Part shown: positions 18,596 through 64,000 of the stretch, one piece after another | How the letters are laid out: every line of letters begins with the position of its first letter | Position numbering within the stretch: position 1 is the first letter of the stretch | Source of the DNA: Dimorphilus gyrociliatus | Taxonomy: Eukaryota > Animalia > Annelida | Direction of reading: 5' to 3' | Assembly (NCBI GenBank): GCA_904063045.1 | Contig: CAJFCJ010000025.1 | Span: forward strand, 124,001 to 188,000 | Length of the DNA: 64,000 nucleotides | The notes under the pieces: generated by a model | Databases searched by the model: none | Told to the model about the DNA's origin: nothing | What the model saw: only the letters and a program-made list of their open reading frames with translations | Made by a program: the position numbers and the translations under genes

Positions 18596-19814
18596 TTAAA
18601 CGCGAATACGGAATGAGCTGTTAATATTAATAGAACGTTATTTTCAATATTAAAAACACTTAAAAATTTGTTTATATATTTACTTGACGAAATCTGGTGC
18701 CTTGGATATAACATGTTCAAATTCGGCAAAGGATAAAGCTCCATCGTTGTCAAGATCGGCTTCTTCTAGTATCTATAGATAAAAAAAAATATTTGCATAG
18801 TTACAAAATAGTAATAAATATTTGATATATTATAATAGGTAGATATAGTAGAAAACAGGCTTTAATCCTAAATAGATCGATTCTGTTTAGAATAAGCTTT
18901 TAATATTCGCAAAATAGAAGAAAAAACACAATTAATGGACAGATATTCGTCGCAATTCAAACTTTAGTTCTTAAACACGATCAGGTTATTTATAAACAAA
19001 AATTTATAGTTGCTCCTATCTTTAAGTGTACATAAAATTTGATAAGACTTTAAAAGTACTAACGTTGGAAATTAATTGTTCTAGGTCGTCTGCTTCCAAT
19101 ACCTCATTACCAGTTAGGTGATTCACGACGTTTTTCAAATCACCTCTAGAAAGTACATCGTCATCATCAAAATCTGTTTGTTTTGGATAAAGAGAATAAG
19201 ATGTTAAATAGGGTCTCTTTAAAAGTTAATTTTTCGTTTTAAGAATATAATTTAATTACCGTAAATGCGAAATGCGTATTCAACTTTGACATGCTTTGGT
19301 GCAGCTTCTGAAAAAACGCTCATCATATCTAGGAAGTCTTCGAACGACATATCTCCACTTGATGTCGAGGAAAACACTTTACAGATCCTTTCATTAAAAG
19401 GATTAGCCTTTAATTCTGGCAAACTCATGATAACATCCATATCGAGGCGTCCGTCTCGATTCGCATCAACGAATGACGGATTAAGTTGTCGAAACTTCTT
19501 ATAGACACTAAACAAAAGTTTGATTTTAAAAATAATTTATTTATATCCAATATACAATAATAAATTGATGAACTTACTGTAAAATTTCTTTTTTCGTGAA
19601 ATATGTCAATTCCTGTTATCAATAAAGTACGTCAAATCGTGACTTAGATTACGGAACTAATTTAACGCGAAATTGAGAATAAGTGAAAATTGGTCACTTT
19701 AACTCATTTCTTAGAGATACAAATTTTTAATTTTAATGATAGTAGAATGAAAATGTTACTAACTTGGTATTCTTCAAGTTGTCTGTCATCAAACACACTG
19801 CCTTGGTTTCCCAT
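18596..19814 (-). CDS. CIB1: Calcium- and integrin-binding EF-hand protein (CIB1-like), 6 exons
   Basis: Myristoylation N-terminus MGNQGS, LEEYQ|[50 protein letters not shown]|[21 protein letters not shown] and C-terminus APDFVNSFRIRV*. Confidence 0.9.
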
Positions 19815-22631: not shown

Positions 22632-24522
22632 ACTAAATATTTAAGAAAAACAAAAAAGGACAAGAGAAAAAAGTTTCTTTTCAAAAAGATTTCAAATACT
22701 CTCCTATTCCATTAAAAAAAGACTATATATATATTTACGTGCATACATACATACATACATACATACAAACAAAAAAACTGCTTGATTTTAAGTTGAATAC
22801 GGCAAAAGAAATTGAAATTTAAGCTTCGTCGCTTGATATTTTTTTTTAATCTAATGAAGAGCGGTGTTGGAAAAAGCTGCCTGTAGCTGTCTTATAAATT
22901 ATAGTTCGTAACTTTGTAGAAAGGATAAATACAAACAGCAACAAAAACTAAAAAATAAACTAATAAATAAATAAATACAAATTTTCTCACTCAAATTCAT
23001 AAAATGAATCTTTTATATAGGTAATGTTTCTTATGTGGAAATTCATATGTAAGTATATATACAATATTGGCTTGTATATATACTGTATATATAAATATTC
23101 TTTCCTATTTCAAAAAAATACGAATATTACAATTATGAATAAATGTTACTAATGTGAATGATGTATTATTGTACTACTAAATTTATTAACTAACATTTTA
23201 ATGAGCAATTAGAGGAAGATGCTCGACTTCGAAGAGTCAGTCGTTCTTTCAACTTATTAAATTAAAAAAGAGAATTTAGTGTTTCATTACTTCAACATGA
23301 CAAATTAACAGACAAATTGACTGATAGATTCTTTTACAGTTACGCTACAATGAAAATAGGGAAAGTGAAGAAGATAACTAATTAATTTTAATGATAAGAC
23401 TATTTATTTAGATTTATGCTGTTTAGAAAAATATAATCACCAGATTTTTTAGGCCATATGTTTCATTTGTTTTATTTAAATATATAAATATATATAATTA
23501 TATAATTATTGTATATTAAATATTATTAATTAATCTTTGGCTGAGAAATAATCAATAGATGGATTGGAGAAATACTTTTCTCAAATATGATTATAGATAT
23601 TGAATAGTATTTATATGTCTATTAATATATATATATATATAGATATATACAGTATTTACTGCATGTAAAAAATCAATAGTAAACTTATGCACTTTATTTT
23701 TGTTGCAATAGAACAAATGACTTATATTTTTATCTCTCTCTATACATTTAATGCTGAATATATCGTATTTATCTAACTTACAGTCATTTCATTAAACTTA
23801 CTATGTTGGTAATACTTTACTTTTTCTTCTCTCTTACTTTATACAACATTATTATAATAGTTGAAGAGGAACGTTAAATTTACCTTAATATCTTAAATTA
23901 AATTTACATAGTAAAAAAATCAGGTTCTTTTTAAGCTACTTGATTTTTTTTTTTTAAAAAAACAACATTAACTTTTTTTTCTAAATTTCTATATAGTTTT
24001 ACTCTGATGAATATTTCTTTATTATTTAAATTTGTTTAGGCCTAGTTTAAAAAAATATATATAATCATGGAAATTTCTTTTTTATCTGCATGCATATAAT
24101 ACAATTGTATATTGTATATTATATTTATGATACTATATTTAATATCTATTTAAAAGTTAAGAGATTTATTATACTCTAAATTTTAGATTATGTTACTCAA
24201 GGTATTAATATATCATATATCTTTTAAGATATTTAATTTCTTCATAGATCACGCAATTTATATTCCACATTCGTTAATCTATTGATCATCCACTTTTATA
24301 AATTTTTGACTTTCTTATTGTCAGATTTATAAGCTTAATGGCCCTAAAATAGGCCCTTTTATTTTCTCTTCTTCTTTTTGGCATTAAATCTGTACCGAAA
24401 AGTATAGGACTATAAGAGGAAAAAAACCTCAAAACTCTATAAAACCTTCACTTTTCTCTTACTCTATCTAATGCCAGAGTTTTCTCCTAACTTACTGCAA
24501 ACCAAATTAAGGTAGGCCTAAA

Positions 24523-24534
24523 CACGTGACCAAT
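24523..24534 (+). promoter_or_regulatory. E-box (CACGTG) plus CCAAT, possible upstream promoter of the SDR gene (with 5'UTR exons)
   Basis: CACGTGACCAAT, followed by donor-like sites (about 24727, 25112) and the acceptor ttttttag at about 25217 before the ATG at 25273. Confidence 0.35.
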
Positions 24535-25272
24535 TCTTATAAATATACGTTACAGCTTTGGCAATACGCCAGTTTCATGTATAACGCAGAATCGTTTTTT
24601 TCTCTATGCGATATCGTGAATTTTATATTGTTGATTTCAGTCGAATAAATTCATAATTTTTTGAAAATTAACTGGTAAAAAGTAGAATAGTTTGTGAATT
24701 TGAACTGAAATTGAAACAACAAATCAGTAAGATGAGCTTCTTTTCTTATTTTATCTTTTATAATCGTTACATTAACAGATTAGTATAGAACGAAGTCTAA
24801 AATTTTTCAAAGGAACATATGATAAATACTGAATCAATAATTTACTATCAGACTATCGAAAGAGTTTAAAAACGATTGATTTAGGAAGAAAACTCCATAG
24901 ACAAGATTTTACTATTGAATTCAATATCTCATCATTATAAAACAACTTGTATATCTTTTTTCTTATTTTTTTTCTCTTTTACTCTCTCTCTCTCTCTCTC
25001 ACTCACTCTCCTTTCTCTCTCGCTCTCTCTCTCTCTCACTCTTCACTATCTCTTTATATACAATAAATTTTTTTTATAGATATACAGAACATTAAAGACT
25101 TTATTGAACCTGGTAAGGATAAACAATTTATAAGGTTAAATACTAAAAATCCAACAATTAAGGCTTTTATATAAACTATGGGTAAGAGTTTTAACAGTTT
25201 TTTTCACCTTTTTTAGAAGAGGGAATACAAAGTTTTTGACAACATCTAGAAAATCAGAGATAAATTGTTAAC

Positions 25273-26176
25273 ATGAAGAAATTTATTGCTTTAGCCGTTC
25301 TTGTATACGCTATTTATTCTTTTTGGGAACCTTTTGACCCTGAAAATGTTAATGGAAAGAATGTTGTTCTGACTGGGGCAACTAGTGGCATAGGAGAGCA
25401 GATGGCTTATGAATTCGCTAAATTAGGGGCTAATCTAATCATTACTGCTAGAAGGGAGAACAGATTACGTGAGGTTATTGCAAAATGTAAAGAGCTTAAT
25501 CCAAATGCCCAGTATCACTATTTTCCTGCCGATATGAGTAACATGGAAGATATAAATGGCCTTATAAAGGTAAGTGTATTTCCTTTATATATTAATATAT
25601 ATTAGTATATACATATATATATATACAGTATATATCAGTATATATATAAATAGAAGAATCTTTCCTATGTAAATAAATTCGCCGCAGATGCATACATACA
25701 TACGAATACATATTAGTATATACATTTACTGTACATCTATATATATTTATGCATAGAGATGTTCATAAATTCGTCTATCTTTTCATCACTACCATAGTTA
25801 ATCATTGGATTTGACAAGATTTATAGTGTTTCGCCCCCTTTCCCCCACGCCTCGTTCCCTTCCCCCTTATCCCCTTAACGTAGGCATGTAAAATTGTCTA
25901 TATTATGCCCTAAACTATTGTTTCTCTCTATTTTTTTTATGTAGGATAAATAATAAAGTATTATTTATTTCTATGGAAACATAAGAGTATCAGATATTGT
26001 TTTTATTAAAAAAAGTCATATGTACCATATGTTTAAATTGTGCATGCTCGGAAAATGTACTCTTGGATAACTCTTTAATTATTAAAAGTAGTCCATCGCA
26101 TCAATAGTATGTCTCTCTTTCTATACAATAAAAAGTAAATTAACATATATATACAGTATATACTTTCGCACTCTCA

Positions 26177-26216
<40 letters not shown>

Positions 26217-27852
26217 GCTCTTCCATCTCAATCTTTTAGCTAATATTCACTCACGATTACATATTTACAACCTTCTTCCACCTTTCACCTCTTCTCTTTA
26301 TCATCTTTCAACCTCTCCTCCTCCTTTTCCTCTTTCTCTACATCTAGCTACCCCAATTCTACTATTCTTATATTAGGTTAACTACGCTCGTCTCTTTTTC
26401 CTTTTTTCTCTTTTTTACGTCGTCTTTTTTATTGATTGTTTTTATTGAAATTATTTAAAGATAACTTTAAGCCTATATTTCCACATCGAACGATGGGAAA
26501 CTGTCCTACTTTAACGCTATTTTGATGTTTATAGGCTTTTCTAATTGTATTATTATAGAAAATATGCACCGTTTAACTTTAATATCTAATGTCTTCCCTT
26601 ACTCATCATGCTCTTCATATGCTTAGAATTGATTCACTTAAACTCTTCTTATTCTCTTAAGACCATATAGAGTAGATTTTAAGTAATTTTTTATTATTCG
26701 TGTAAGCCTATATGACCTATAAGTTACTACTTGTTTTAGAGGATAAGAAATGAGGGAAAAGAGAGAGCTAGTGTGTGTGTTTGAGCGTGTGTGAAGAGGG
26801 GGAAGGGGAGGGGGAAGGGGAGAGTATATATATAAAAAGTGTAAGCTTTTGTTCACAACATAGTTTTTATAAAATAAACGAAATTCGTATTGAATGATAT
26901 TTTAAACGTCAATGTGATTATAATCTCGTTCGGTTTATCAAGCATCCCATCCAGCAACTTTTATTAATATAAAAGAGGCTAATTTATTGACCCTAATTAT
27001 CAATACAAGCAAATGTAACGAGATTTTGATGAGTCTAAGTGGTTAATATTCGTATTTGAATGTGCATATTTTGTTTGCCTTAATACCGAATACGACTAAT
27101 TTATAGAATTATAAGCAAGTTTATACCACTCATGTATTTGAAACCTTAATGAATAAATATGATTTTCATTCAAATAGTAATAATAATAATAATAATAATG
27201 AGCAAAACAACAGTTATTTCTTTAATGAAACAATTATGATCATAAATCATTCATAGTCATTTTGTTTTTTTTTTAGTTTACAAAGACCCAATGGGAAAGC
27301 CTTGATTATCTTGTGTTAAATCACATTCTTGTGCACAATCTTGGCTGGTGGATTGGATCGAATACCAATGCTACTCTTCTAAATACGATTATGGATACAA
27401 ATTTCAAGGCCTATGTTACCTTGTCATCTGGGCTTATGTCTTTAGTGGAGAAAGCCAGTGGAAGATTAGTTGTTATGAACTCCGTTGCTGGCAAGATAGG
27501 CCAACCCTATTTAGCGGCCTACAGCGCTTCTAAATTTGCTTTGAACGGTTTCTTTCAAGCTCTAGGAGCTGAACTAAAGTTGAAAGAAGCAAAAGCAACC
27601 ATTACCAATTGTATAATTGGTTTAATTAATACCGAAAATGCTGTAAATAATTTAAAAAATTTTGGTCTGGGAAAAATAGTGAAGGCTTTTTCTCCGGCGA
27701 CACCGCAAGATTGTGCGTACCACGTGATTAAAGGAGCATCGAATAAAAGAGAGACTGTTTATTTCCCCCTAACTACACCTTTTCTTCTTCATTTTGATTA
27801 CTTTTTTCATTCATTATCGGAGAAGCTCCTCTTTTATTTTTATCAACTATGA
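25273..27852 (+). CDS. HSD11B1L: Short-chain dehydrogenase, 11-beta-hydroxysteroid dehydrogenase 1-like, about 290 aa, 2 exons (25273-25569, 27277-27852)
   Basis: N-terminal anchor, TGATSGIG Rossmann motif, ARR (NADP preference), LDYLVLNHI typical of the 11beta-HSD1 family, catalytic Ser in NSVAG and YSASK. The phase-0 intron AAG|gtaagt ... ttttag| joins the ORFs. Confidence 0.87.
26182..26212. repeat. (CT)n microsatellite in the SDR intron
   Basis: About 15 CT units. Confidence 0.9.
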
Positions 27853-28533
27853 AATTGATAATAATCGTTCTACTAATAACGACATCTTCTTATTGTTGTT
27901 GTCAAGCTCATAGATGCTTGAAAGGGTACGCTCGATGGCCTGGAACATCGCTTTGCAGTTGGTATTTTAAATTTTATATTCAAGTAAATAAATATTGAAT
28001 TAAAAAAAATCGTATTTTTCGTTTTCTCTCATTTAGTTTGTCATTAATAATAAATTTCTTTAAGTAATAAGTTAGAGCAGAGTGAAAATTTTCAGGAATG
28101 TAGAATAGAATTTATCGTATCTTTCTTTTATTTGTTTCGCAACTCGTAAAATAAAATTCGAAAATAAATACAAATAAAAAAAGATACTAACATATGATAT
28201 AGGCCTATGGTTATCGTAACTGTCTTTTAGTATTCTTTCATACACCTCCTCCTTTAAATAATAACATATCAAGTACATGTAATAATATGTCTATGTACAC
28301 TATATGCAATTATGAAATTGTGTTTCATATACATTTTATATTTTGTAAAAGGGCCGTGCTATCCTGGAACATACGCCGATACTAACGAGCATGATGAAGG
28401 TTTTTGTCGACCTTGCCCTAGAGGATTTTATCAACCCTATTACACTAGAGACTACTGCCTCCCCTGCTATTATAATATGTTTCAACTCGGAGCTAAATAT
28501 TGCGCATCTCCTCCTGCAAAGAAGTTCTTTTAG
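27849..28533 (+). CDS. Small secreted Cys/Tyr-rich protein, 96 aa, 2 exons (27849-27957, 28352-28533), with ephrin-receptor-like/TNFR-like CxxC repeats
   Basis: Signal peptide MKLIIIVLLITTSSYCCCQA. The phase-1 intron A|gttggt ... gtaaaag|GG creates SLCRPCYPGTY, which parallels the next repeat FCRPCPRGFYQ. Eight Cys lie in the mature part. AATAAA is at 28568. Confidence 0.75.
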
Positions 28534-28907
28534 TAAGCGAAAAACAAAGGATGATATTATTACATACAATAAACATACCTTCTCTTATATCTCGAAGTCT
28601 TTATCTCAATATTTGTTTTCTTTTAAGATATAAAAGTATAAATAAGAGACTGAGAAATGTTACGCCCAATTTAGCATCCTTTAGAAATGTTCCTCTAACC
28701 TCCAAAAAAAACATACGTACAAACAAAAGGTCAAAGAGAAAGTATAAAATACGATAATGACGCTTTTCTAACAAAATAAGAGATAAGATATTGACAGGAA
28801 TGTCGGTGGTCTTAGGCTTAGCTTTTTTGTTTTTTCATCCTATTCACTTATTGCATTAAAAATAAACAAGGAATAAATATTTAAATATATTTAAATTATT
28901 GCAAAAT

Positions 28908-31900
28908 ATGGAAATTAAGAGAAAGAAACCTCTATTTATTTATTCGTTTTGGATATTATTTAATAAAAATGGTAAACATCACCTTAGACAGCCATACCTT
29001 TATACACTACTACAAATCTTTCTACCTATAATCTTAGCATTAATTATTGGATTGTCTAAAGTTTAAATACTACTTTTGCATTGAATTATATATATTTTAA
29101 CCTTTAACCTTTACGTTATGACTAAATATAGCTTATGGATAAAAATTACGGAAGCTTATATCATTTTGAATACAGTGATGAATACAATGTTAATATTGAT
29201 AATAATAATAGCAATGTCGATTGGATAAATGGAAGGATTAGTTATTATTTGATTGATTATAAGTAAGAGTAATTTGATTATCTATTGAAGATTCTTCTTG
29301 TTCTTTACATTTAAAAGGAAAAAAACAATACCAATAGACCTAAGAATTCACTCACTAAGAAATTAATGAATATTTACATTGACGAATTGAATATGACTCA
29401 AGGTTAATATTAATGATAATATAGCTAATTGATTGACAATTAATAAGGATCTGTAAATATATAGATTCCAAAAATATCACAAAGTACGAAAATCATAATT
29501 ATATTACACTATTATTCCATTTTAATGAAAGGTTTAATAAGCCATTGAATATTTCATATACAATTAAGTATATTTACTGATATTAATACAAGAATTTCAA
29601 TTTAAATGTGTACATTTATATATACATTTATACGTAATTGAATTTAGCATAGAAAGCAAAGTTAAAGAACCTTCTAATTGGCTATTTGGTCAGATTTTCA
29701 GTAATAATAAAATTATAGAATTATTAAATTTTCAAGATGACAAAAGTCAATTGAAAAAGGTCTATAAAGAATTCAAGAAACAGTTAATTGAGAAATAATT
29801 TAATTACTTATTCAATAGATGGAAGATAAAGAATACTTTGTCCTTCAACTTCAATCATTCGTTGATAAAGCTATAATAAAGCATGTCTTTAACGGTTCTA
29901 AAGATTCTAGATCTATTGTCTTAAAGCCTATACCAACTTTAATAAGTCAATCAACATCCTTAGAAAATATTAAATATATTCTTCCCATGATTTTTATTAT
30001 AACGGTTCTACCTTTTCTATCTTCTTTTATTCGCTTTCCAAATATGGATAAGAAAGTTTTAAAAAGGTAAAAATAAGCAAACTAACCGTATTTTTACTAG
30101 TAAAAGTGTATAATCTTCTTATAAAATCACAGTTTTAGATCGAATCAGATTGTCTATCCGTATTGGACGTCTTGGTTTGCGTACATGTTTTTCGTGCTGA
30201 TGGTAGTACTTGTTACAGTACTATTGTTTTTCTTTTTGGATTTCGGATACGGTGCAATAATAAGTAAATCTTCTCCAACTATAGTTTTTTGTCTATTGAC
30301 AATTTATGTGTGTGATGTTGTTCTTTTTTGCTCTGTTATGTCTTCGTTAATTACTTCGCCGAATATTGCTGTAGCAGTAGCCGATATACTTTTCATTTTG
30401 TCTGCTCTTCCTTATTTTTACTTAAAGAGAGCATATAGGGGATTTATTTCAACTTATTTACCTTGTCTCTTACTTTTTAACGTTGCTTTATTTGATGGAT
30501 TTTACGATATTCTTAGTTGGGAAGAAAAAGGCGGTTCTTCATGGTCTAATATACATCTAGCAGCTCACTCTAATAGTTTGATATCAGTGAAAATTTGCTT
30601 AATTTGCCTTTCGGCATGGTTTCTTATCTTTCTAGTAGTTGCTTTTATCGTTAAACTACTCTATTCTGTACTTAAAGGAGATATGTCTTCACTAAAGGCT
30701 GTTATAACTCTTCTTAGCTGTCAGCACCATATTAACGAATTGAACAGAAGGTATCATCGGATAAATTTCGCCTTAAACTATTCCCTTATGCTCGTTGTTC
30801 ACTTTTCAATTTATACAACACAGATACGCTTCATTTTTAATGATGGAAACGGTTGATACTAGCGAAGTTAGCTCCGTAACATCAGTTATGGGCGAAAGAA
30901 ATATACCAGAACGCGATGTAATTTATTTTAAAAATGTCTTTAAAGAGAAGTTTTACAACGGTGTACCGTCCGGTTTAATTCTTCATGGGATTAATTTGAA
31001 ATGCTACCGTGGAGAATTAACATCCCTAATCGGTTTAGGAGATAATTCTGGACTCGAAGAAATCTTGGAACTGATCGCTGGCTCCTCGAAACCGTTAGAA
31101 GGAACAATCAGCGTTCTAGGTGTGAGAGCCGATTTACCCCTTTGTAGTTGGAATGTTTTTCATTGCCCTTCGAGAAATATTCTTTTTCAGAGATTGACTG
31201 TAAAAGAAAATATTATAAATTTCGCCAAGTTGAAGGGTATTACTAAAGATTCGATGGAAAAATATATAAAACTGGTGTTTGATACCACGCAATTAATAGA
31301 ATTTCAGCATCATTTATTATGCTTGATACCCTACTCATTACAACGGAGATTATTTATTTGTATGATAATCTATACACCTATTCCAGTTGTTAGCATTACC
31401 TAATATTTTTGTAATTATTATCAATAATCTTTATTTTTTTTCTTGTCAATTAATTAATAAGATACTTTTAGAGGAACCAATGAAAGGGCTAGACTATAAT
31501 GAATCGTTAATAATATGGGAAGTTCTAAAGGAAGCCAAATTTAATAGATCAATAATAATTACCTGTAAAAATTTTGATGAAATTGAAGGAAATGCTGATA
31601 GAGTTATTGTTTTAGAAGCTGGCGTGGTTAGATGTTGCGAAGATGTTTCTGATTTAACTTTTAAAAATGGTATTGGTTATGAAATTACTATTTATGGTAA
31701 CGACGACTTTTCATTAAGAATAGATAAAATAGACGAACTCTTTAGTAAAAACTATCCTGATGCAATCATTGTCAATAAGAAGTAATTGATAACATTTAAT
31801 AAGTTTTCACTTTTAAATTATATAGATACTTGTAAAAATAAATAGCTATCTTGAACATCGTATAGTCGTTCCAAACTTAAATGGTCTAGAGATGGCGAAT

Positions 31901-61445: not shown

Positions 61446-64000
61446 TGCATGTATACCTTTCCTCTTTTTCAACACAAAACCTGCATATTAATGTGAGTGG
61501 AATTATCGGAATTCGGTTGAATAACTTTTGATCAGCGAAAGCAGAAACATGCTAAAGTTTGTCTTTAAATATTCATAATAAACTATCGTAATAATTTATT
61601 ATCGACCTAAAACATGACTTTCATATTGGGAGACTTTCTTTTTTGCTTTTGTTAAAAATATACAAAGGAAGATAATTATTTGATCTCATCTATTTCTATG
61701 CAAGATATAGTTTATACACAATATACGTAGATATGTTTAATATACAGAATATATACATTTATATACGGTATACGTACATGTAAAAAACTAATACTCTGGA
61801 ATAGAACGATTAAGTCTAACAAAGCCTTGAGGAACGTGACGGTCAACGAAATGAAATTTTTCCTTCGACTGCTGTTTATCAAAGGGAAAGGAAGGGAAGG
61901 ATTTATTATAGAACGTCAGTTTCTTCTTCTTTATCTTTACTCCTAGTTTTTTGCTTTTTTCCTCTATATTTATCTATGTTACAATGCAGTAAATTCGTTT
62001 AAGCGTTAACTGCGAAATTTACTGTATAGATATAAAGGGAGAAGATAAAGAGTGAAAGAAGAAATTAAGTGATGAATGAAGAAAAAAAGAAGTTTTCAAT
62101 CATCAATCTTTTTTCCATTCTTTCTTGTTCTTTCTCTTTAGTTTCCCTTTCTCTTTGACAATTGTCCCTTTTAGGATTCCCTTTTTATAGCATTTAATAA
62201 TTAAAAAAACTTGCAATTATAAATAAAACTATTGATTATGTTTGTTTTGGTCTATTCATTAATGTAGAAAAAAGTGATTACATGTGCGTAGAATCTCTCT
62301 CTCTCTCTCTCTCTATCATATGTATATTATTCTCTCTTTCGGTGTTTGTTGGACAGAGGATTACCAATTTTTAATTAAAAGAAAAGACCAAAGTCGGAAA
62401 GAGACTAAATTATAGACATCTACAGCAAAAATAGAAGTCAGGGAAGTAGATTAAAAAATAGAGAGATAGAGAGAGAGAGAGAGATTATTTTATATTTTGT
62501 TGAAAGTTTTTTTTTATAAAAAAAAAGAAATGGAATAAATAGAATTATTAAAAGTTGTGTTGTACGTATAATATTTGTAAACTACTTGACAGGAACAGGA
62601 CCAAAACTAGTTTATTATGTATGAGGATTCTATCGTAGTATTTTTAGAACTATTTTTTTTATCTATCTCTCTCTCTCCCCTCTCCCACTGTCTGTCTCTT
62701 CCTCTATGTCCAAACTATATATTCATCTATCCTTCCATCAACTGATTTTCTCTCTTTCCCAATTTTTTTATTTCACTTTTTTATTTTGCTAAATCGATCT
62801 AACTAGGAGATTTTGTAGCTTATTCAAGGTATATTACTAGTTATATAATAAAGCTTGGATTGACCCATTCATTAATAATATTTACATAGTACTAAAGAAA
62901 CGGATTGGACAAACTTGGCCTCGATTCTAGACAGAAGTGAGCCATATCTGATTAGGGGTTGGTCTTTGAAGGGTTGACGACGTTTATATGTTACCCTCGA
63001 TGGTTATTCAATAGATACAAAGGTGAGGGTCAAAATGGGAATTACACTTAGATATATACAAATCTAAGAATTCAAAGATACTTAGACTAAAACTCTACAA
63101 TCAAGAGTAAAAAAAAAGAGCACAATCATAAATCAAAATTTTTATCAACCTATAGGTAATATTTAAAAAGAATTTTCATCATTGTTAAATTGAATAAGCT
63201 TAATATACGTTTTTTAAGTCCTATTCCATACTTAGTCGTGACATGGTTCGATCTTTTTTCTACGTCATTTCTTTGGATCCCAACTTGATTTAAGTTTGCA
63301 TTATCTAGGGATTTTTTTTATTTGAAGAAAGAATATACGATTGAGCAAGTTGTAACACGTTAATATAGTTTATATATATTACACATTAACTTCTAAATAG
63401 ATAAAAATTGCTGTAAAGTAGATTTTTTTCTTTCTTTTTGTTGGATAAAAAAAACAGTCGTTTATTTTATTCATTCCGCTTTTTTTTCGAATTTTCTCTT
63501 TTTTTTTTCTCTCTCTCTCTCCCTTTCTCACTCTCTCACTATACCAGAAATATTCTATGCATTACAATCAAAGTACAGGCCTATATAATTATGACAAGAG
63601 AAGTAAGAAGTTTGTATGTCACAGAGAATGTTCTTAAAGAAATGTCTATATATAGAGACGCTGTATAATGTCCAGATGTCTGAAAATGTTACTAAGTGTA
63701 TATTGTATATTTAAATATACTGAGTACTGGACTATATTTAAGTTTAATTGCTTTATGAATATTCATTATGTTAAAATATCTATGAAAAATTAGATATAAT
63801 GAGAACAAAACAAGCAATACAATGATATCCAGGTTTGGAAATTTGAGATAGCGGTACTTGTTTATTTTTATTACAGTATTGAAAAGTTGTTTTAGAAAGA
63901 TAGCAAAGGGAGAAAGAGAATATAAGAGGGAAAAGGTTGGAGTAGGATTAAGAGTGGTATGATAACAATAACGATTAATTAGCGTAAAGAATTGATAATT

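Follow-up and report, generated by a model that had tools for sequence, protein, structure and literature searches.

The stretch of DNA analyzed here, a 64-kb window of the annelid Dimorphilus gyrociliatus (all coordinates are positions in this window, on the plus strand unless stated), contains a gene for a dehydrogenase of the short-chain dehydrogenase/reductase (SDR) type, the end of which coincides with the beginning of a second open reading frame (ORF) for a predicted secreted, cysteine-rich peptide. The two ORFs meet in an ATGA stop/start overlap at 27849-27852. The sequence at 27844-27852 reads CAA CTA TGA, such that the SDR frame is closed by the TGA at 27850-27852, and the peptide ATG at 27849-27851 shares all of its three bases with the end of the SDR frame, with an A at the -3 position (27846). 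An initial annotation of this stretch had reported the same overlap and flanking A, along with AATAAA signals at 27987, 28049 and 28568, and all of these positions agree with the sequence.

The upstream gene encodes an SDR of 290 residues in two coding exons. The first of these (25273-25569; 99 codons from the ATG at 25273, including the TGxxxGxG motif) lies in an exon at 25216-25569 that also holds the end of the 5' untranslated region (UTR) and is delimited by the sequence and an RNA contig. The second, at 27277-27852, comprises 191 codons and the TGA, and is supported by the sequence and the family alignment, which locates the catalytic N, S and YxxxK residues within it. The protein carries the stretches LTGATSGIG, LNHI, NSVAG and YSASK and a hydrophobic N-terminus, MKKFIALAVLVYAIYSFW; it matches the Pfam model adh_short, and the best named matches of a profile search (by their NCBI names) are HSD11B1L proteins from molluscs, other annelids and vertebrates. 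The features expected of an HSD11B1L or 11-beta-HSD1-like protein, namely the cofactor motif, the catalytic N/S/YxxxK, the N-terminal hydrophobic anchor and orthology, are all found, and by these features the SDR is identified as an orthologue of HSD11B1L, the hydroxysteroid 11-beta-dehydrogenase 1-like protein. An alignment of orthologues places its stop at the ancestral C-terminus of the family, which in D. gyrociliatus ends ...LLFYFYQL.

The peptide is encoded by two exons. Exon 1 (27849-27957), which is delimited by the sequence, the RNA contig and conservation and is continuous with SDR exon 2 in RNA, opens with the signal-peptide-like MKLIIIVLLITTSSY and includes the first cysteine unit; it is followed by a donor GT at 27958-59. 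Beyond the acceptor AG at 28350-51, A27957 joins GG28352-53 to form an in-frame AGG codon, after which the frame reads PCYPGTY...CRPCPRGFY...KKFF up to the TAG at 28531-33. The coding part of exon 2 (28352-28533), recognized from sequence, profile and predicted structure, consists of cysteine repeats that resemble the Ephrin_rec_like type, and the complete precursor has 96 codons. The repeat pattern C-x2-G-x-Y...C begins in exon 1 and runs on across the junction, thereby providing independent support for both the splice and the frame. Comparison of exon 2 with the Pfam model Ephrin_rec_like (PF07699) yields 21.1 bits, just below the cut-off of 23.1. A profile of exon 2 searched against 1.8 billion representatives recovered one true orthologue; all other matches are large multi-repeat proteins, and nearly all those checked contain Ephrin_rec_like repeats, with expectation (E) values down to 1e-20. 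The AlphaFold model of exon 2 (mean predicted local distance difference test score, pLDDT, of 79) superposes with a template modeling score of ~0.7 and at 2-3 Å on the cysteine-rich modules of CaSR, EphA4, EphB2, 4-1BB and ELAPOR1; Foldseek assigns these matches weak E-values (0.03-0.3), which is to be expected of a chain of 59 residues. The peptide is thus predicted to adopt a fold like that of the cysteine-rich domains of Eph receptors and TNFR. Its 3'UTR, as read from the sequence and the RNA contig, extends from 28534 to the end of that contig at 28836, passing the AATAAA at 28568.

RNA evidence for D. gyrociliatus comes from the contigs of one public run (X1), placed on positions 24600-30200. 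A single 1750-nt contig of depth 508 and without mismatches spans the 5'UTR exons, both SDR exons, the overlap and peptide exon 2, its pieces lying at 24699-24726, 24779-24948, 25080-25111, 25216-25567, 27275-27957 and 28352-28836. The reported joints, including those from 25567 to 27275 and from 27957 to 28352, are all of the GT..AG type; the intron 24949-25079 is missing from the joint table, as it borders a repeat, and was deduced from the record coordinates, with GT..AG ends. Because the introns are removed from the contig, the run represents cDNA. The peptide intron (27958-28351) has a depth of 0 across 27966-28339. Hence, no junction separates the last SDR exon from peptide exon 1, which together make up a single exon, and the RNA confirms use of the predicted peptide junction, in keeping with the in-frame splice to a cysteine-repeat exon that the initial annotation had proposed. 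The SDR and peptide ORFs accordingly occur together on one assembled contig with all introns out, with the proviso that contigs can merge overlapping transcripts and carry no 5' ends, 3' ends or strand.

The public databases present this locus differently. The SDR exon is 100% identical to DgyrCDS13385 of D. gyrociliatus (P0002; present in NCBI and UniProt), a model of 304 amino acids that follows the SDR up to ...SPATPQD and then passes from 27712 to 28352 to take peptide exon 2 as its tail. The peptide has no public gene model of its own. The existence of this model, and the fact that the GT at 27713-14 following the exon end at 27712 would be in frame with the acceptor, might be taken to mean that the locus encodes a single fusion protein. 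Against this, the RNA contig is continuous through 27275-27957 and a joint from 27712 to 28352 is not reported in it; the fusion loses the conserved SDR C-terminus in favor of a tail that aligns with no orthologue; its donor is absent in the second of the two relatives described below, which has GC at that place; and the conserved signal-peptide exon would be left without a purpose. We therefore regard a fusion protein as extremely improbable, and DgyrCDS13385 is probably a chimera of two genes, a prediction artefact that forces one ORF through a two-ORF transcript.

Searches with peptide exon 2 and the SDR exon identified the same arrangement in two further animals, which we call dinophilid-like from synteny and similarity alone. 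Relative 1 is represented by an RNA contig in which the SDR exons are joined (L002, from SRR31837527), and relative 2 by genomic contigs (L003-L006 and L001, from SRR23372216/228/229/231). L002 encodes a full SDR of 290 residues that is 72% identical to that of D. gyrociliatus, and L001 carries peptide exon 2 followed by the first exon of an ABCA-type transporter gene, the same gene order as in the D. gyrociliatus window. The SDR of both relatives ends ...HVYTV, with GTATGA at the same aligned column as the D. gyrociliatus overlap; the ATGA is thus kept at L002:1331-1334 and L003:1567-1570, and the persistence in related species, which the initial annotation had named as a check, is indeed observed. 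The ATG opens MKLIFLILLLLISSYATQTRKCYLGYVRWPGSGVC in one and MKLILLVQLIAILLHTSQTRKCYIGYVRWPGSDIC in the other (MKLIFLILLL..., MKLILLVQLI...), and the donor of peptide exon 1 is conserved in both relatives as TTTGCAGTTKGTATTT, with the shared donor context TTTGCAGTTTGTATTT. A public gene call for the peptide exon of the relative (P0001) reads the TGA at L001:679-681 as Trp and so gains 20 extra residues; this run-on is an artefact of the genetic code used by the caller, as under the standard code the peptide ends ...PPAKKIVKK.

The divergence among these species allows the selective constraint on both ORFs to be gauged. Synonymous sites are saturated between D. gyrociliatus and either relative (proportion of synonymous differences, pS, of 0.72-0.76), and the two relatives differ from each other with a synonymous divergence (dS) of ~0.95. 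The ratio of nonsynonymous to synonymous divergence (dN/dS) across the three species is 0.06-0.08 for SDR exon 2, 0.07 for peptide exon 2 and 0.15-0.41 for peptide exon 1 with its signal peptide; the sole indel in the three-species peptide alignment is of 3 nt and in frame, and eight cysteines are conserved. Both ORFs are, by these measures, conserved protein-coding sequences under purifying selection. The low dN/dS, the in-frame indel and the conserved cysteines, seen against saturated synonymous sites, further argue that the peptide is a real protein-coding gene translated from the overlapping AUG and that the overlap is old, and conservation together with dN/dS rules out a chance ORF. When the whole window was scanned for stop/start overlaps that join long ORFs, three candidates emerged, compared with a mean of 0.64 in shuffled sequence. 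The candidate at 19428 on the minus strand was rejected, since its ATG encodes a Met within an exon of an EF-hand protein (ORF 19252-19515) and marks no gene overlap; the other, besides the locus studied here, is a TAATG at 63666 on the plus strand. The overlap of SDR and peptide is not due to chance, as the same ATGA and downstream ORF recur in the two other species.

To understand the provenance of this arrangement, we compared the end of HSD11B1L in more distant animals. In the chiton Liolophura and the annelids Paralvinella and Owenia the protein ends at the same aligned C-terminal position, and in these three there is neither an ATGA at the end of HSD11B1L nor a homologue of the peptide within 10 kb downstream. 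The SDR stop is thus ancestral, and the peptide came to follow it along the branch that gave rise to D. gyrociliatus and its two relatives; by this comparison, the arrangement arose within a Dinophilidae-like lineage.

As to how the peptide is translated, we favor, tentatively and at a little less than an even chance, a conserved dicistronic mRNA from which the peptide is made by termination-coupled reinitiation. One transcription unit would give one spliced mRNA with two unrelated conserved coding regions; some of the ribosomes that end the SDR at its UGA would remain bound to the mRNA and begin again at the overlapping AUG, so that less peptide than enzyme would be made, in a fixed proportion. 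The stop and restart codons overlap as AUGA, and this is conserved; they thus have the spacing (overlap, or ~20-30 nt) seen in reinitiation dependent on a TURBS, or termination upstream ribosome-binding site. HSD11B1 is anchored in the membrane by its N-terminus, with the catalytic domain facing the lumen of the endoplasmic reticulum (ER). By analogy, the same anchor and topology would apply to the SDR, and a signal peptide is predicted for the peptide; hence, both products would be made at the ER and the restarting ribosome would already be at the membrane. The SDR stop lies 105 nt upstream of an exon junction, a position that may be relevant to nonsense-mediated mRNA decay, and coupling may shield the SDR mRNA from the decay that the intron downstream of the stop would otherwise set off. 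The more specific proposition, that ribosomes routinely restart at AUGA after a 290-codon ER-lumen SDR without a TURBS-like element, and have done so ever since three deeply diverged dinophilid-like annelids last shared an ancestor, is one we put forward with some doubt.

Several points weigh against reinitiation. Restarting after an ORF of 290 codons normally needs a helper element, and none of the expected signs of one emerged: the last 100 nt of the SDR contain no TGGGA (UGGGA in the RNA) in any of the three species, RNAalifold finds no conserved structure upstream of the AUG (covariation term +2.12), and the fold z-score is -0.97. Likewise, over the last 200 nt of the SDR, synonymous and nucleotide conservation among the three species is not raised except at TATGAAATT. 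Given the lack of a UGGGA motif, of conserved structure and of extra conservation, reinitiation here, if operating, is not of the TURBS type. Furthermore, the conservation of the ATGA is partly forced, since the peptide starts at the ATG and the A after it is the first base of a conserved Lys codon, so that the overlap is partly self-preserving once formed. The 1750-nt contig does not prove a single mRNA molecule and gives no 5' ends, and promoters in this genome routinely lie very near the upstream gene, as illustrated by the ATG of the ABCA-type transporter at 28908, ~70 nt past the contig.

The last of these points bears on a different reading, which we regard as possible though more doubtful, namely that SDR and peptide are two overlapping transcription units, in which the peptide has a capped monocistronic mRNA of its own, started from a promoter that lies either within the final SDR exon or within the long SDR intron. 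The mRNA of the SDR would then run through the peptide gene or end within it, and the ATGA would be a by-product of genome compaction, kept as the peptide start. The tiny intergenic space between the end of the mRNA contig (28836) and the ABCA ATG is in keeping with such crowding, and most dicistronic loci of Drosophila also have monocistronic transcripts (PMC4528330). The SDR intron, at 1707 nt (25570-27276), is unusually long and carries RNA contigs at a depth of 1-19, with depths of 11-19 climbing toward its 3' part, as well as a conserved block of 60 nt; unusually large introns have been linked to regulatory ATAC-seq (transposase-accessible chromatin) peaks in the D. gyrociliatus genome paper (PMC7854359). 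However, an intronic start would leave many AUGs ahead of the peptide. A start within the last exon would make the peptide AUG the first one, as the 212 nt before it (142 nt in both relatives) are free of AUGs, but this stretch does not discriminate between the readings: in Paralvinella, where no peptide follows, AUGs are likewise missing from the 218 nt before the SDR stop, and with this control the argument was dropped. A promoter in the exon is also not favored by the level of conservation in the last 200 nt of the SDR, and no separate contig or loose end was seen for an internal start, though the contigs could not show one. A dicistronic mRNA might alternatively have its peptide reached by cap-independent internal entry or shunting, independently of SDR termination. 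This draws on the same single-RNA contig as reinitiation does, and the FlyBase curators hold internal entry to be likely for many dicistronic pairs in flies (PMC4528330); nevertheless, no conserved structure or sequence element precedes the peptide AUG and the exact stop/start overlap would be unneeded, which leaves internal entry, in our assessment, quite improbable.

Other routes to the peptide could be set aside. Leaky scanning would have to pass 18 AUGs between the SDR AUG and that of the peptide. A -1 frameshift fusion is precluded by the TGA at 27795-97, which closes the peptide frame 18 codons upstream, and would moreover bury the signal peptide. A spliced-leader operon is at odds with the contigs of this one run, which have no loose ends in 24600-30200 and hence give no sign of a spliced leader, and with the genome paper, which reports no spliced leaders (PMC7854359). 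A choice between splicing and polyadenylation could be superimposed on any of the above readings: an SDR-only mRNA would end in the peptide intron, in competition with the spliced two-ORF mRNA. This added layer is suggested by the AATAAA at 27987 and 28049 within the intron, and by L002, in which all the upstream introns are removed and the peptide intron is kept, with the end lying 30 nt past an AATAAA; this is, however, a single contig from another species. Opposing it are the zero depth across 27966-28339 in the D. gyrociliatus run, the poor conservation of both the intron sequence and the AATAAA positions, and the frequency with which AATAAA arises by chance in AT-rich DNA. Comparison with the relatives revealed no conserved elements in the peptide intron and no conservation in the 3'UTR. 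We consider such a switch rather unlikely. The initial annotation had envisaged either a monocistronic SDR mRNA or a spliced bicistronic one; the spliced form has its counterpart in the contig with both ORFs, whereas use of the intronic AATAAA signals is not borne out in D. gyrociliatus by the RNA at hand.

In addition to the part of the exon preceding the SDR ATG, 5'UTR exons lie at 24699-24726 (joined to 24779 by a GT..AG intron; the contig is cut within this exon, so that its true start may lie farther upstream), at 24779-24948 (a piece of the contig with homology to L002) and at 25080-25111 (contig record 1521-1552, joined from 25111 to 25216, with the preceding intron beginning with GT at 24949-50 and ending with AG at 25078-79). 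A further one is suggested by homology only: positions 24476-24511, followed by GT at 24512-13 (ATTAAG|GTAGGC), match L002:66-100 at 89% and probably represent the end of the first 5'UTR exon, in which case the SDR mRNA would have at least four 5'UTR introns, an unusual number in a compact genome. The exon 24779-24948 shows unusually high nucleotide conservation, with 82% identity over 143 nt to L002:214-356 (E 1e-35) despite the saturated synonymous sites. No upstream ORF is shared, since the relative has GTG in place of the ATG at 24819, the consensus fold is weak, and Rfam gives no match, either to this exon or to any other part of 24300-29000. In the long SDR intron, the conserved block at 26426-26487 matches L003:304-363 at 79% over 63 nt (E 2e-8), with the core TTTCCAC.TC...CTGTCCTA, and sits where the low-depth RNA contigs climb to depth 19; it might serve as a regulatory element or an alternative start, or represent an intronic RNA. 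Downstream of the peptide, a contig of depth 3 begins at 28825, just before the end of the mRNA contig; given that this end and the ABCA ATG are so close to each other, the promoter of the ABCA gene must overlap the peptide 3'UTR. Within the ABCA gene, at 29402-30131, a joint of depth 7.5 leaves out 728 nt; it has GT..AC ends, carries 8 additional letters (TTTTAAAA) and is either an odd splice or an assembly artefact.

To our knowledge, it is only in viruses that reinitiation following a long ORF is understood in detail; cellular examples are few, and the importance of their second product is mostly unsupported. An AUGA or UAAUG overlap following a long ORF is the signature of such reinitiation in caliciviruses, influenza B, victoriviruses, hypoviruses and the SART1 element (PMC10275272); feline calicivirus has AUGA and influenza B UAAUG, and a TURBS element is involved (PMC10275272, PMC2793014). 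The annelid locus resembles the calicivirus and influenza B cases in its long upstream ORF, in the bases common to the stop of that ORF and the following AUG, and in the lower downstream yield that would be expected, but differs from them in having no UGGGA motif complementary to 18S rRNA and no conserved upstream structure, and in being a cellular, spliced mRNA. SART1, a non-long-terminal-repeat retrotransposon of Bombyx (Kojima et al. 2005, as summarized in PMC10275272), offers a parallel for UAAUG stop/start coupling in animal cells; in that summary it is a mobile element needing a downstream RNA structure, whereas none was detected here. A few human mRNAs also appear to reinitiate without an RNA element (Gould et al. 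2014, PMC3923131; PMC10275272). As in our case, these are cellular mRNAs in which the second ORF overlaps the end of the main ORF and extends into what would be its 3'UTR, with no RNA element required. However, the human second ORFs are mostly without evidence of conserved function, in contrast to the peptide, for which the selection inferred from three species is comparable to that on the enzyme, and the aspartate-rich C-terminal motif of the human study (PMC3923131) is absent from the SDR terminus.

Among animal nuclear genes, the initial annotation had described such an arrangement as rare. This is overstated, as FlyBase lists 159 dicistronic pairs, including 45 in which both proteins seemingly come only from the dicistronic transcript, and 13 fly pairs from polycistronic transcripts overlap slightly, and out of frame, in their coding sequences (PMC4528330). 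Two-protein mRNAs are thus already known in flies, and a dicistronic nuclear mRNA is not exotic in animals. The Drosophila genes resemble the present one in being animal nuclear loci with two unrelated conserved ORFs on one processed (here putative) mRNA, not resolved by a spliced leader, at times with a tiny coding overlap, and the mechanism by which their second ORF is translated is mostly undefined. The present locus differs in its long upstream ORF with many AUGs, in the intron that interrupts its downstream ORF, and in its putative joint mRNA, which is represented by an assembled contig, with translation of the peptide predicted from sequence. The spliced-leader operons of nematodes, flatworms and tunicates likewise have two co-transcribed genes on the same strand with essentially no intergenic space; unlike them, the annelid locus has no leader-bearing loose ends, and a trans-splice acceptor could find no place except within the SDR coding sequence. 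Moreover, the animal that carries it has been described as operon-free: the paper on the 73.8-Mb genome of this miniature annelid found no candidates for spliced leaders in 5'UTRs and concluded that there are no operons and no trans-splicing (PMC7854359). Further pairs of this kind may go unnoticed in compact animal genomes where gene models are fused or missing. With both products under purifying selection and a 4-base overlap that has survived saturating synonymous divergence, the locus would be well suited, as a clean natural system, to testing for termination-reinitiation that needs no element or for promoters in coding exons. What it adds to the known systems is an annelid case in which the overlap has been retained across three deeply diverged species, between a long, AUG-rich upstream ORF and a downstream ORF split by an intron.

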